From contig NW_021835987.1 of NCBI RefSeq assembly GCF_006345805.1, positions 1 through 64,000 on the forward strand: 64,000 bases of DNA, read 5' to 3'. The stretch comes from Octopus sinensis. Taxonomy: Eukaryota. This document shows, one piece after another, positions 24,840-52,421 of the stretch. Below the pieces are notes generated by a model that worked only from the letters and a program-made list of their open reading frames with translations, did no database searches and was not told the origin of the DNA. Numbering within the stretch: position 1 is the first letter of the stretch; the number at the start of each line of letters is the position of its first letter. Position numbers and translations under genes: made by a program.

Positions 24840-24889
24840 CTACGGCTTCAGGCTGATGAATATGGCCATGGAGTCTGCTATTGCATAAC
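24840..24889 (-). CDS. Gene B exon 5 (terminal coding exon)
   Basis: ttacttgcag acceptor; (G)YAIADSMAIFISLKP then TAG. Exons sum to 855 nt. An AATAAA follows in the 3' UTR near 24730. Confidence 0.87.
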
Positions 24890-25216
24890 CTGCAAGTAAC
24901 ACAACAACATCAATAAACAAAGGAAATGAAATATATCGTGGAAAATACTCATACGCGGTCGCTCGTGTTAATAGAAATGGCAGCCAAATCTCCACAAAGT
25001 GTAATGGGAAGCATACAGGTAGGTCACGGTCAGAACTCTTTTGATCATAAATCTGTTGAATCAAGGCTGATTGGCTGTGAACTATAATTACAAAAATAAC
25101 TTCTGCAATCACTACTCACATTAAGAGAGTGAGAGAGAGAGAGAGAGAGAGAGAGAGAGAAGGGAGAGAGCGACAGAGAGACATACACAAACTCACAAAA
25201 TGAAAACATCACTTAC

Positions 25217-25377
25217 CGTCGTTCCAGATGACACTCGAGCTTGCATCAGCATATTGAATTGCAGGATAACGATCCAGTTTCTCATATTCACAGTCTCTTT
25301 CAGTTTGAATTAATTGTAGCCAGCCTCTAACCACCGCACAGTCAGCCATCATCGATATATAGAAGTTATGTTTACCG
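25217..25377 (-). CDS. Gene B exon 4
   Basis: ccaactctgtag acceptor; GKHNFYISMMADCAVVRGWLQLIQTERDCEYEKLDRYPAIQYADASSSVIWND; G|gtaagt donor; 161 nt. Confidence 0.87.
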
Positions 25378-25950
25378 CTACAGAGTTGGAAAAATACTTG
25401 TTTTGGTTTCAGAATGAGAAAATATAAGCATTTAATAAATATAGCATTATGTTCCATGCACACATTTGAATCTGTCTGTATTTAATTAAAATAGCCATTT
25501 GTGTATCATATTTAAAGTATAAACACACTGTCAATAAACTAGTTACTTTAGTAGTATAATCTCTGAGATAACATCTCCTATGGATTTGCTTTGTTTCGAA
25601 CAATAAATATTGGTGACACGAAAATTCGTTCCAGCAGCGGACAATGAGAGAAAAAGACGCTATCACAGGACAAATATTGCAGAAACTGGTCTCTCGGGAG
25701 TGTGTCTACGTTAGGTATGATATGTAGACGTCTATACCAGTATGTTAGAATCTGCATTGACAGCTCCAACAGCCGTCTGTAGAATCGTTTGTTCAGACTG
25801 AGGGTAAATTCAGGAGATCAAGAAAATATGGTGAATAAGAATATAGATTTAAAAACAGATTTGTATTAGTAGCATAAGAAAAGTGCGTTTAGCTCAATAC
25901 GACAATACGTCTCTACATAGGGAAACAGAAAAAATATATTTAGAACATAC

Positions 25951-26117
25951 CCATATCCTCCTGAAAGTCTGAAAATATCTGGCTTGGCTGAAGATAGGTC
26001 AATCCATGGAGAACTTTTCAAGTTCTCATAAATGAACCAGTTAGATAATTTTGAATTTTGTCCATCAAAAATCATAGTCACCACAGCAGTTTGGTTTTTA
26101 TAAATCACTAGTTTCAC
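25951..26117 (-). CDS. Gene B exon 3
   Basis: ttttcag acceptor; VKLVIYKNQTAVVTMIFDGQNSKLSNWFIYENLKSSPWIDLSSAKPDIFRLSGGY; GG|gtatgt donor; 167 nt, phase 2. Confidence 0.87.
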
Positions 26118-26574
26118 CTGAAAAATAAGAGTAAACATATAACAGAGACAAATACACACTTACACACACACATAAATAGATCAAATTTACATTAATCGAG
26201 GTAATTTGACAGCTATTTCATTAGATGCGAGCCTAAAGTCTACTCCAGAAGGAATTAATACTAATGTTATTTTATATATATATATATACATATGTATGTA
26301 TGTATAAAATGCGCCCTTTTAAAGCCTAGCCAGGCTTATGGACCCGGTTTCCCGGTTTCAATGGCGTATGGACGCCAGTCCATCGCAGCGTTACACATTT
26401 TTGCCAGCTGAGTGAACTGGAGCAAATTTTGCTCAAGAATACAACGCCTCGCCCGGTCCAGGAATCGAAACCACAATCTCATGATCATGATGCTGACACA
26501 CTAACCACTAAGCCATGCGCCTCCACACACACACACACACACAAACAAACAAACACACATATATGTTCATGGTA

Positions 26575-48455: not shown

Positions 48456-49032
48456 CTGCAGAGTTGGAAAAATACTTGTTTGGGTTTCAGAATGAGAAAA
48501 TATAAGCATTTAATAAATATACAATTATGTTCCATGCACACATTTGAATCAGTCTGTATTTTATTAAAATAGCCATTTGTGTATCATATTTAAAGTATAA
48601 ACACACTGTGTATATACTAGTTACGTTGGTAGTATATTCCCTGAGATAACATCTCCTATGGATTTGCTGTGTTTCAAACACTATAAATATCGATGACACG
48701 AAAATTCGTTCCAGCAGCGGACAATGAGTGGAAAAGACGCTATCACAGGACAAATATTGCTGTAACTGGCCTATCGGGAGTGTGTCTACATTAGGTATGA
48801 TATATAGATGTCTATACCAATCTGTTAGAATCTGCATTGACAGCTCCAACAGCCGTCTATAGAATCCTTTGTTCAGACTGAAGTTATACTCACAACAAGA
48901 TCAAGAAAATATCGTGAATAAATATATAGAGTTACAAAACAGATTTGTATTAGTAGCATAAGAAAAGTGCTTTTAGCTGAATACGACAATACGTCTCTAC
49001 CTAGTGAAAGAGAAAAAATATTTATAACGTAC

Positions 49033-49196
49033 TAAATTCCTGAAAGTCCGAAACCCTTTGGGATGGTTGGATTTAGGTCATTCCATGGGGAACTTTTCAA
49101 GCGTGTATCATAGAACCAGTAATAAAAATCCGTATTTCTTCCATCAAAAATTAAAGTCACCACAGCAGTTTGGTTTTTATAAATAACCAGTTTCAC
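49033..49196 (-). CDS. Gene C exon 3 (intact)
   Basis: ttttcag acceptor; VKLVIYKNQTAVVTLIFDGRNTDFYYWFYDTRLKSSPWNDLNPTIPKGFGLSGI; TA|gtacgt donor; 164 nt. Confidence 0.8.
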
Positions 49197-52100
49197 CTGA
49201 AAAATAAGAGTAAACATATTACAGAGACAAATACACACATACACACACACATAAATAGATCAAGTTTACATTAATCGAGGTAATTTAACAGCTATTTCAT
49301 TAGATGCGACCCTAAAGTCTACTCCAGAAGGAATTAATACTAATGGTATTTTAAATATATATATATATATGTATAAAATGTGCCCTTTTAAAGCCTAGCC
49401 AGGCATATGGACCCGGTTTCCTGGTTTCAATGGCGTATGGACGCCAGTCCATCGCAGCGTTACTCATTTTCGTCAGCTGAGTGAACTGGAGCAACGTGAA
49501 ATGAAGTGTGTTGCTCGAGAACTCAACACCTCGCCCGGTCCAGGAATCGAAACCACAATCTCATGATCATGATGCTGACATACTAACCACTAAGCCATGC
49601 GCCTCCACACAAACACACACACACTCACACACACACACACACACACACATATGTTCATGGCAGCTAAAAAGCCTCTGAGAGTTTTCAATTGTTGATAATT
49701 CTCTTATCTTTTGATATTGCAGACTTGTGTGCTTCTTGGGTTGTGTGTTGTAATAAAGGGTAGCTTATTGTACGTATCTGGAGCATTTTCCCTTTTTCGT
49801 AGTTCTTCGATATTTATTGCTTTGGCACATTCTATTCTGTTGTCTGTTAGCATTAATTAATATTGACATTTAAGTATTAATTGATTATTTCTTAGAGTCT
49901 TTTAGAGAGAGTTTCAGGGTTTGAAACAATTGTGCAGATTCTTCTTGCAAGATTAAAGGGGATATTATTCTTCGTGTGTTTGGAATGGCACGAGAAGAAT
50001 AGTAAGTACTCTTTAGAGTATCTTCATTTGCAGTGAATATCTGTTTCAATGATTTTATCTCTGTTGATGTTTAGTATATCCAGGAATGGTAGTTGGGTTT
50101 TACTGTATTCCATGGTAAACTGAATATTGTTGTTTATGCTGTTGATTAGAATTTTGTTTTTGTTGGATTATTTCGTTGTCGAATTAGTCTTGAATTTTCC
50201 TTCTGAAAAAAAACTCAGCTAATTATTACAGTGGAAAAATTATAAGGACAGCCATTTCTATTCATATTTTTCAAATATATAATACAGTACCACCGATTTT
50301 CTATTTGCACCACTACTTCTACAACAACTACAACTACTACTACTACTACTACTACTACTACTACTACTACTACTACTACTACTACTATTGCACAGTCACA
50401 CACACACACGCACATACATACATACATATATATACATATATATATATATATATGTAGAGATTGAGAGAGAGAGAGACAAAAAGATAGAGAGAGAAAGATA
50501 GAGGTGCAAGCATGCATGTCTGGATAGTTATAAGCTAGATTTGTAACCAAGTGATTCTAGTTCAATCTCAGTGCGTGGCAACTTCTGTCATAGTTGTTGG
50601 TCAACCAATGCATTGTGGGTAAATTTGGGAGACATTTATTTGTATTTCCGTGTGTTTATAGCTTGTATTCATGTCTTTGCTTCTGTGTATATGTCTGCCT
50701 GTGTCACTTCTACTACTTGACAAAGGATGTTGTTGTGTTTCTGCACCAGTAACTTAGCGGTTCGGCAAAATACCTCGATAGATTACATACCACAGGATTT
50801 GCCCTATTAAAATCCTTCAAGGTGGTGTCATTACATGGCCACTGCCCAGTGACTGAAACAGGCAGACGATAAAGCTCTATGTACAATGAATATTTGTGTG
50901 TCGACGATTGCTGGATAAATCATTGTCTGTTAAATACTGTTGATTGAATCAATGAATCTATACTTTCCGAAAAACGTGTAACCTTCAGAGAAGCCATTGA
51001 AACGTTCAGATTAGTAGTTAGGTGTACAGGTCAAAACGCCAGACGACATGTCCTCTTAAATCCTTTACCTCCATATAGAGTATAGTGTGACAACAACAGA
51101 TCCCTATTTGTCTCAAAATATGGCGATGTATTTCAGTTGTCCCCAAGTGCAACCGTCAGCCAATTTTTCAGTCCCTCCTAAACTTATTCATATTGTTTTT
51201 GATCTTCACACTTGGGTCTCCCTTGGGATATCCATCAGACGGCTTACCTTGCAAAGAGGTTTGTGGCTAATCTCATTTAATGCTGTTGATCCGAGTTACA
51301 ATAGATTCCTGGTTCACCTCTTCCTTCAAGGTTTTGTTTGTTACTCAGTCTTGCCATCTCACAAGAAGAATGACAAACTAATTCAGTTTCGATTTCAAGT
51401 CTCACCGGGGTCCGCATGCTTAACTTTCTGCCGAGTCCAATAAAACTTTTACCAGTCATGTATCGTAAGTCATGGATCATAAGTTGATTTTATCGATTTT
51501 GTTTCCCATTTCCTAGTTACTCCCAGAAAGGAGAGCCTTTTGTCTATGATAAATATTCTTACTACCGTGGTTGTCGCGGATACATTTCATCACAACACAG
51601 TTTCTTGTGTCTGATCTATAATTAGTAGTCACCGGAAAGTGAAACCACGAGATTTCGATCTTGAGCTGAATATCCTGTGTGTATGTGTGAGTGCTGGTGT
51701 TTGTATATGTGTATGCTTGTACTAAAACACTCAATATTTAAGCAGTGAATGAACTCTAAATTATCAAAATGAAGACCGCTTTTGTAAACTTATGAACACC
51801 TTTGCACATGAACACTAGTCAATATCTATTAATTTTCTATGAGGAAGATGACTTTCAAAAGTCATTCCAGGATTGTCCCGCTTGGAATCTGATGCTGACA
51901 ATCGTAAAAGTGCTTGGAATGCATACATCGGTCCATGGGAGCTCTTTGAAACGTTTGTAGGTGTGTTAACAACTGTTGCCTAAGGCAAGAATTTTCTCCA
52001 CGGTAAATCGCAGTGAAAACCGCCGTTTTTACGGGTAAAATATGTCTGAAATATATGTGAAGTGATCCAAAAAATAGTTTATCTTTATGGTTATTATTAT

Positions 52101-52242
52101 GATAATGTGTGTGTGAAGGAATCGTTTTTGGTGTGAGTGAGTTTGTTTGTGTGTGTATGTGAGTGTGTGTATGTGTGAGTGTGTGTGTGTGTGTGTGTGT
52201 GTGTGTGTGTATGTGTGTGTATGTGTGTGCGTGCTTACATAC

Positions 52243-52421
52243 CTCATCAATTGGTAGATGCGCCCAGAAATCAAGAATAGGATGTCGGAAAAAGTTCGGA
52301 CAGAAGGAACCATTGCATTTGTCTACATTCCAGGTTGAAGGGCTACCCCAATTCCAATATGAAAGCAAGACTTTTGAACCAGCTCCCATAGATATGGCAT
52401 ATATTTTAATCCATCGGCTAT
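52243..52421 (-). CDS. Gene C exon 2 (intact)
   Basis: tatttcag acceptor; SRWIKIYAISMGAGSKVLLSYWNWGSPSTWNVDKCNGSFCPNFFRHPILDFWAHLPIDE; gtatgt donor; 179 nt. Confidence 0.8.

Follow-up and report, generated by a model that had tools for sequence, protein, structure and literature searches.

Exons diverging faster than introns in a tandem gene family of Octopus sinensis

Paralogs B and C of the tandem family

The first 64 kb of an Octopus sinensis scaffold (NCBI RefSeq assembly GCF_006345805.1, contig NW_021835987.1, positions 1 to 64,000; this whole stretch of 64,000 nucleotides is referred to here as the window) contain members of a tandem gene family, and two of these, paralogs B and C, are the starting point of this analysis. 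Exons 3 and 4 of the two genes differ from one another far more than do the introns that flank them, and diversifying selection on the C-terminal domain of the family's protein is well supported by tests on six related genes. The assembly that was searched (2.72 Gb, 13,516 contigs) holds at least ~60 copies of exon 1. Genes of this family have 5 exons and encode predicted secreted proteins of ~285 aa, exon 1 specifying a PAN/apple domain preceded by a probable signal peptide (the N-terminus being hydrophobic), and exons 2-5 specifying a beta-rich domain of ~185 aa (the C-terminal domain). The DNA of the window is AT-rich and laden with microsatellites.

Five-exon models for B and C were set by alignment with annotated full-length Octopus homologues (~295 aa). 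(A 6-exon, 348-aa model was rejected: the homologues show its penultimate 'exon' to be spurious and its last exon to be read in another frame.) Paralog B (24840..29296; minus strand, as are all exons of B and C) is intact and encodes 284 aa that comprise signal peptide, PAN/apple domain and beta-rich C-terminal domain in that order. Exon 1 occupies 29296-28999 (with an in-frame ATG upstream, at 29329), exon 2 27756-27578, exon 3 26117-25951, exon 4 25377-25217 and exon 5 24889-24840; direct reading of the sequence finds every splice site canonical. Hypervariable blocks 1 (26022-26054) and 2 lie in exon 3, and blocks 3 and 4, which surround an invariant Cys and a GWL motif, lie in exon 4. The best database relative of B is the public model for B itself, O. 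sinensis LOC118761913 (P0002, 253 aa). It matches through exons 1-3, then runs into intron 3 after '...SGGYG' and lacks exons 4-5, though both are intact in the DNA; P0002 is probably mis-annotated, the other option being a transcript with a retained intron.

Paralog C (47878..61749) also consists of five exons: exon 1 at 61749-61449, exon 2 at 52421-52243, exon 3 at 49196-49033 (donor GTACGT), exon 4 at 48455-48298 and exon 5 at 47945-47878. Its exon 1, which lies beyond the interval 24840-52421 covered by the first-pass annotation of this DNA, is disrupted; compared with B it has 6 indel events, in the 3' third, and its frame is shifted locally and interrupted by two stops. Exons 2-5 form an open frame of 190 codons with in-frame indels only and usable splice sites. 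Exon 3 is the strongest outlier relative to B and has hypervariable blocks at 49101-49133 and 49046-49076; a further block lies in exon 4 (48407-48439). No predicted protein matching C is present among the 44 database homologues of the B protein. C is probably a pseudogene, unless the exon 1 indels are (long-read) assembly errors.

Self-BLAST delimits a segmental duplication whose B-side copy (22590..27843) takes in the 3' flank, exons 5-2 and introns 4-2, and whose C-side copy (45947..52508) is colinear with it; the duplication extends also to intron 1, exon 1 and the upstream region. The C-side intron 2 has an extra insertion of ~1.5 kb (50244-51788), and intron 1 has grown from 1.2 kb in B to ~9 kb in C, in part because a fragment of a non-LTR (non-long terminal repeat) retrotransposon of the long interspersed nuclear element (LINE) type inserted there (an open reading frame (ORF) with a zf-RVT match, 52163..53212, plus strand). 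Long (AAT/AAC)n and (GA)n microsatellites adjoin the exon 2 acceptor in both copies (27745-27900 and 52425-52510), and others lie within intron 4 of B (25130-25165) and C (48185-48255); most gaps in the B-C alignment arise because these microsatellites differ in length between the copies. Intron 2 of both genes contains a common element of ~200 bp (26300-26530 and 49380-49610) flanked by (TA)n and (CA)n. By eye it resembles a minus-strand tRNA-derived short interspersed nuclear element (SINE), a resemblance that is unconfirmed; ARAGORN finds zero tRNA genes in the window.

Exon against intron divergence

Non-coding divergence between B and C was taken from alignments of the duplicated block anchored on high-scoring segment pairs, with one microsatellite-rich stretch excluded, since global MAFFT alignment across the large insertions inflated introns 1 and 2 to 21-28%. 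Over the whole duplicated block, non-coding DNA mismatches at 269/3865 positions (6.96%). Exon 3 differs at 37/164 positions (22.6%; 3.2-fold over non-coding, Fisher P=6e-10) and exon 4 at 26/158 (16.5%; 2.4-fold, P=6.5e-5). The corresponding figures for exon 2 are 19/179 (10.6%, P=0.07) and for exon 5 7/50 (P=0.08), while exon 1 has 42 mismatches in 295 positions in addition to its 6 indel events. Introns 3 and 4 stand at 47/571 (8.2%) and 21/327 (6.4%), respectively. Scanned with a 100-column sliding window, only exons 3 and 4 rise to a peak (a microsatellite-rich flank aside), and within exons the changes bunch in blocks and leave the exon ends conserved.

That exons diverge faster than introns between B and C had been proposed in the first-pass annotation from hand counts, and for exons 3-4 the proposal is confirmed, far beyond chance. 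Its exon counts (35-40 of 164 for exon 3, ~27 of 158 for exon 4) agree with ours, the first 16 residues of the signal peptide are indeed identical in B and C, and the variable blocks (QNSKLSNWFIYEN against RNTDFYYWFYDTR; SMMADCAVVR against SHASNCTVDR) were correctly quoted. Its intron counts are likewise sound as counts, 6/152 being reproduced for the stretch upstream of exon 3 (26121-26272) and ~5/150 becoming 6/150 upstream of exon 4, but both stretches come from the most conserved parts of their introns, and the true background is 6-8%, not ~4%.

A search of the genome DNA with the exon 3-intron 3-exon 4 segment of C yields four further genes with alignable introns 3 and 4: P33, P34 (=P0003, LOC118768580), P35 and P36, all on contig C30. 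In the 15 pairs that these form with B and C, intron divergence is 4-12%, exon 3 divergence 10-24% and exon 4 divergence 17-37%. In 15/15 pairs, the proportion of nonsynonymous differences over exons 3-5 (pN) is 1.7-3.5x the divergence of the introns (P 7.5e-4 to 8e-14). In pairs without C, the proportion of synonymous differences (pS) at conserved-residue codons is ~.10 (.106) against an intron value of ~.094, and the five paralogs other than C have 12 synonymous singletons in 400 sites against 111 intron singletons in 4185 (a singleton being a position at which the other five genes agree). These matching rates make the introns a fair neutral yardstick for the five genes, and the exon excess is therefore nonsynonymous. 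Set beside the introns, a comparison proposed at first pass, nonsynonymous divergence (dN) is in excess in every pair, and synonymous divergence (dS) is so in each pair that includes C and in several more. P34-P35, the youngest pair, differs at 43 nonsynonymous and at 2 synonymous positions (dN.166, dS.025, intron.043; dN/dS, or omega, 6.6-7.6, P=.0003-.0016).

Codon models were fitted with a self-written GY94/F3x4 likelihood implementation. A single omega for all sites (M0) comes to 1.75 with the exon tree, to 1.65 with the intron tree (twice the log-likelihood difference, 2dlnL, from omega=1 is 8.9 and 7.5, respectively) and to 1.99 without C (P=.0016); over the gene sets the likelihood-ratio test gives P.0016-.006, and P=.046 when both C and P35 are left out. 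M2a is preferred to M1a with 2dlnL of 63.0 (exon tree), 60.6 (intron tree), 66.1 without C and 46.6 without C and P35. Its selected class holds 37% of codons at omega ~5.3, and overall the site-class omega is ~5-8, covering 26-38% of codons. Twenty-two codons reach a naive empirical Bayes (NEB) probability >=.95, in four blocks that match the variable segments pointed out at first pass; 15 of the 22 are different in B and C, as are 26 of the 99 other sites. At positions called hypervariable from other family members, dN is.47-.52, against ~.09-.10 for introns (.07 for B-C non-coding DNA).

In the six-gene subfamily, then, the exon excess is essentially nonsynonymous and is located in four short blocks around invariant Cys and Trp residues. 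The claim that hypervariable segments surround a fixed Cys/Trp scaffold and are under diversifying selection holds at the family level, and diversifying selection on the C-terminal domain is well supported there. What does not stand is the derivation of that claim from B and C by themselves, whose omega is 0.92-1.41 and whose synonymous sites are also raised.

Recombination, decay and alternative explanations

A number of observations weigh against attributing the exon excess to selection. Positive selection is not demonstrable from the B-C pair alone (omega ~1-1.4). Over exons 2-5, dN is 0.18, dS 0.18-0.20 (up to 0.21) and dN/dS 0.92-1.04 by four methods; over exons 3-5 the maximum-likelihood omega is 1.41, not different from 1 (P=0.31). 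B-C pS is.183 against.075 in introns (P=.0045), and dS is more than twice the intron divergence. For this pair dN/dS at or near 1 is thus combined with dS well above intron divergence, which is what the first-pass annotation had named as speaking against its own interpretation. Moreover, when B-C changes are polarised with the four further paralogs, the excess falls mainly on C, the gene whose exon 1 carries a frameshift and stops. C has 22 singleton changes, densest in exon 3, at 3.6x its intron singleton rate, and 10 of the 22 are synonymous (10 in ~80 sites, or.125, against 14/837, or.017, in introns: a roughly sevenfold difference), whereas B and the other paralogs have singleton rates equal to or below their own intron rates. 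In maximum-likelihood trees the intron branch of C is the shortest (.028) and its exon branch nearly the longest (.185), a 6.6-fold disparity. The extra synonymous changes point to an additional mutational or recombinational input into C; selection on amino acids alone would not predict them, and drift of a pseudogene would not predict a rate above neutral. Given this synonymous excess and the broken exon 1, a large part of what exons differ by in excess between B and C may lie in a gene that does not function, and may not be adaptive.

Recombination has to be weighed in the same balance. The pairwise homoplasy index (PHI) test is significant for exon 1 (P=.0005) and for the introns of the six paralogs (P=.0075), for which a test of gene conversion had been proposed at first pass; on single short exons 2-4 the test has no power. 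A pair of genes in another subfamily, L053 and L054 (contig C30 of the assembly, G000, at ~65 kb and 111 kb), at first appears to replicate the fast exon 3 (9.8% against 2.4% in introns, P=8e-5), but L054 is a chimera. Its intron 2 and exon 3 match the L050 gene (C30, 22 kb; exon 3 differing by 1.8%), from intron 3 on it matches L053 (2.9%), in each of the two parts the gene that does not match cannot be aligned, and the crossover breakpoint is the 3' end of exon 3. This pair was accordingly rejected as an independent replicate, its pattern being that of a recombination breakpoint and not of selection; recombination can therefore mimic an exon-faster-than-intron pattern. Recombination also inflates M2a and M8 tests, and the codon-model code used here is home-made, not PAML or HyPhy. 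The selected sites, finally, are not significantly concentrated in predicted coil (15/22 against 47/99 of the others, P=.10).

Exon 1 itself is a mosaic: for 33 of its 40 B-C differences both states are present among other paralogs, a central block of C is identical at 97/97 nt to L017 (a copy at C30:646 kb), and the alternative block of B matches a different clade, L002/L004. The B-C differences in exon 1 are block variants that other paralogs also carry and that did not originate after the duplication; they come from exchange between paralogs, which in this family proceeds by gene conversion or unequal crossing-over. Copies also decay, as the broken exon 1 of C and the state of P35 demonstrate (the latter, handled as L035 / L063-L064 at C30:190-210 kb, has a frameshifting 1-nt deletion in exon 2 and an exon 5 acceptor changed from AG to AT).

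The explanation that we favour, and hold to be probable, is that B and C are members of a tandem family, so far known only from octopods, in which selection acts after duplication on four segments, with exchange between paralogs and decay of copies in addition. After each duplication, selection would favour new amino acids in the hypervariable segments (predicted loops and one hairpin), and, as copies arise and are lost by birth and death, each would thereby acquire a new binding specificity. Overlaid on this are the exchange of segments, demonstrated by the alternative exon 1 blocks of B and C and by the chimeric C30 gene with its exon 3 breakpoint, and the decay of copies, demonstrated by C and P35. 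Recombination is, in this account, a contributor beside diversifying selection. The 'arms race' and the 'target-binding loops' of the first-pass annotation are inferences drawn from the sequence.

One alternative takes the main cause to be ectopic exchange between diverged paralogs, by gene conversion or recombination and limited to exons. It would import old differences and require no selection after duplication; the introns of distant paralogs being unalignable, exchange tracts would be confined to exons, which would then look older than the introns. The mosaic exon 1, with its stretch of C identical to L017 and its PHI signal, is what this predicts, as are the partner switch of L054 at exon 3, the synonymous excess of C and the B-C dS above intron divergence; P36, moreover, has an exon 4 that resembles the L053-L056 clade, yet in intron 3 it differs by 8-9% from the B subfamily. 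On the other hand, all four exon 3-4 hypervariable blocks of B and C that were searched for lack another copy in the assembly at <=3 mismatches over 31-33 nt, so that recent conversion from an assembled donor fails to explain them; nor does any other paralog come nearer to C than B does over the whole of exon 3 or exon 4. The introns on both sides of exon 3 differ by 6-8% between B and C, which means that a two-breakpoint tract of ~160 bp would be needed at each exon. Conversion moves variation but cannot create omega>1, and the family omega of 1.7-2 still requires selection; between P34 and P35, imported tracts would carry ~1 synonymous change per 5 nonsynonymous, against the 2 per 43 observed. 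We think it unlikely that conversion is the main cause.

Less likely again is concerted evolution with islands of divergence, in which B and C would be old paralogs whose introns and conserved exon parts have been homogenised while selection rejects conversion of the segments that determine specificity. The concept is described in PMC7042247 and PMC3728101. It is consistent with the PHI result for introns, with a star-like intron tree whose pairwise distances are 7-11% against 17-37% for exon 4, with the 30% of B-C intron differences that are common to other paralogs, and with the dS excess in all C pairs and several others. It does not sit easily with the equality of conserved-residue synonymous (.10) and intron (.094) divergence in pairs without C or with the agreement of synonymous and intron singleton rates in 5/6 genes, and the 5-kb B-C block, far flanks and shared repeats included, is uniformly ~7% diverged and looks like one duplication, not a patchwork. 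This alternative also needs diversifying selection and is a variant of the original proposal, not its denial. The least probable of the alternatives, and a very unlikely one, is relaxed constraint, with C a decaying pseudogene whose exons drift. The frameshifts and two in-frame stops of C exon 1, the B-C omega of ~1 and the absence of a predicted protein matching C from the 44 database homologues all suit it; drift cannot outrun the neutral rate, however, yet the exon branch of C is 6.6x its intron branch and exon 3 has 3.2x the non-coding divergence, and C exons 2-5 are open over 190 codons with in-frame indels only and usable splice sites. As the sole explanation, relaxed constraint is already contradicted by the rate excess.

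The favoured account of selection, exchange and decay can be extended to a more specific proposal, which is tentative and somewhat doubtful: that the family is an octopod-specific diversified recognition repertoire of dozens of secreted proteins, each with a PAN domain and a novel domain, and with the four hypervariable segments on one ligand-binding face. Selection would keep these segments different while exchange between paralogs reshuffles them, and the function would be akin, by analogy, to that of the lectin-like repertoires which other invertebrates have in immunity, saliva or chemosensation, though built on a domain that has no solved structure. In that case the excess of C, confined to exons and made up of synonymous as much as nonsynonymous changes, would be a hint that a mutational or templated process targets exons, besides point mutation.

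The protein family and its likenesses

The 44 database relatives of the B protein, nearly every one of them named 'uncharacterized', all come from O. sinensis, O. vulgaris, O. bimaculoides or Argonauta; UniProt labels O. bimaculoides members 'Apple domain-containing'. The literature searched for the family, its accessions and apple-domain proteins in octopus contains nothing relevant, and the gene family itself appears to be undescribed. The B protein has zero Pfam matches at E<=1. Below threshold, PAN_3 weakly matches 5 of 20 family members (best E=0.005) and PAN_1 matches 2 (E=0.065). The evidence for the N-terminal module comes from an AlphaFold2 (AF2) model of P34 (P0003), which reached a predicted local distance difference test (pLDDT) score of 84.9 with a deeper alignment. 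In this model the N-terminal 70-90 residues match hepatocyte growth factor (HGF) NK1 with a Foldseek probability of 0.99 and NK2 with 0.90, and PAN-bearing fungal copper oxidases (Colletotrichum entries) with 0.96-0.99; the module of the first model also matched the apple domains of TgMIC4. In the model the module folds as PAN domains do, with a helix that packs against a curved beta-sheet. Two cysteines of exon 1, C54 and C75 (B numbering), are the only invariant ones; B has a third, C20, which is not family-wide.

The C-terminal domain has invariant Cys and Trp residues, and it has no Pfam model, no solved structure, no sequence relative in the PDB and no confident fold match by Foldseek. 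A fibrinogen-related domain (FReD) fold was considered and rejected: Foldseek probability is 0.13-0.38, template modelling (TM) score 0.25-0.37 and root-mean-square deviation (rmsd) 10-22 A, and there is no Pfam Fibrinogen_C match. A profile search of 1.84 billion representatives finds the domain in 1025 proteins. Among these are large, multi-domain proteins of the extracellular kind from amphioxus, crinoids, bivalves and a flatworm, together with some from bacteria. The domain often occurs in 2-4 copies per protein (P0045-P0188), outside octopus too, and its frequent neighbours there are F5/8 type C, C-type lectin, SUEL lectin, WSC, PAN, EGF, VWD or ZP domains. This context suggests, by analogy, that the C-terminal domain is a binding module.

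Other members of the family lie in the window. Paralog A (2441..10790, plus strand) is apparently intact, with 5 exons at 2441-2741, 5323-5501, 8147-8304, 10340-10503 and approximately 10733-10782, and is more distant from B and C than these are from each other. A lone exon-3-like open segment on the minus strand (967..1125), near the scaffold end, belongs to a fourth member, the remainder of which is outside the window. With A and this segment at the start of the scaffold, the array must run past the window edge, in mixed orientation. Between family members lie remnants of non-LTR retrotransposons: a tandem duplication (30450-31864 against 32871-34336, 87.6%) around a 576-aa ORF with a reverse transcriptase (RT) domain (31493-33223), and a second RT fragment at 18203-19090.

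Cephalopod genomes are characterised by lineage-specific expansions, for example of protocadherins, zinc fingers and G protein-coupled receptors (GPCRs); to our knowledge, fast-evolving secreted families have been far less explored in these animals. The phenomenon described here is of a known kind, met with in venom gene families and in the divergent islands of immune receptors, and the octopus family provides some of the strongest signs of diversifying selection that sequence can yield by itself. It is a candidate for a role in innate recognition, in saliva or venom, or in chemical sensing, and its C-terminal domain, which is shared with amphioxus, crinoids and bivalves beside lectin modules, is an uncharacterised target for structural work. 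A more general lesson is that in a recombining tandem family one pair of paralogs with faster exons is insufficient, one replicate of the pattern having proved to be a crossover breakpoint.

Accelerated evolution of venom multigene families has reportedly been described for the phospholipase A2 (PLA2) isozymes of crotaline snakes, by Nakashima, Ohno and co-workers, and for Conus conotoxins, by Duda and Palumbi and by Olivera and co-workers. Like these, the octopus genes form a tandem family for small secreted proteins in which the signal peptide and introns are conserved and the mature exons evolve faster than the introns, with dN/dS >1 inside a fixed cysteine scaffold (this being the result for the six-gene subfamily, in tests that recombination inflates; the B-C pair itself, unlike the venom families, is without omega>1). 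The octopus protein differs from conotoxins and PLA2 in being composed of a PAN/apple domain and a domain of ~185 aa, and not a short disulphide-rich peptide or an enzyme. Prominent mosaicism of paralogs and the presence of pseudogenes also set the octopus family, which is known here from its sequence only, apart from those of venoms.

Islands of divergence amid gene conversion are described for the peptide-binding exons of the major histocompatibility complex (MHC) and for a ruminant CEACAM1 paralog that escapes concerted evolution (PMC7042247; also PMC3728101). In those systems as in the octopus family, variable exon segments (there ligand-binding) are more diverged than the flanking introns, paralogs recombine and selection favours difference. 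In contrast, synonymous and intron rates agree in 5/6 octopus paralogs, so that wholesale homogenisation of introns is unsupported, and the octopus domain is unrelated to immunoglobulin or MHC folds. The N-terminal fold, as modelled, resembles the PAN modules of the HGF/plasminogen N domain, Toxoplasma MIC4 and fungal AA5 oxidases, while the octopus family differs in its weak Pfam PAN matches (5/20 members) and has two invariant cysteines in the N-terminal region, against the 4-6 of a conserved PAN/apple disulphide core.

Diversified recognition families of invertebrates include the FREPs of Biomphalaria, the 185/333 proteins of sea urchins, and the VCBPs and ApeC proteins of amphioxus. The octopus protein has neither a sequence match nor a confident fold match to fibrinogen-related, immunoglobulin or ApeC domains (Foldseek TM <=0.37), which distinguishes it from FREPs, VCBPs and ApeC proteins. 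Like all of these families, however, the octopus family is lineage-restricted, large, clustered and secreted, with hypervariable segments and mosaic exchange, and the relatives of its C-terminal domain adjoin lectin domains in proteins of amphioxus, crinoids and bivalves.

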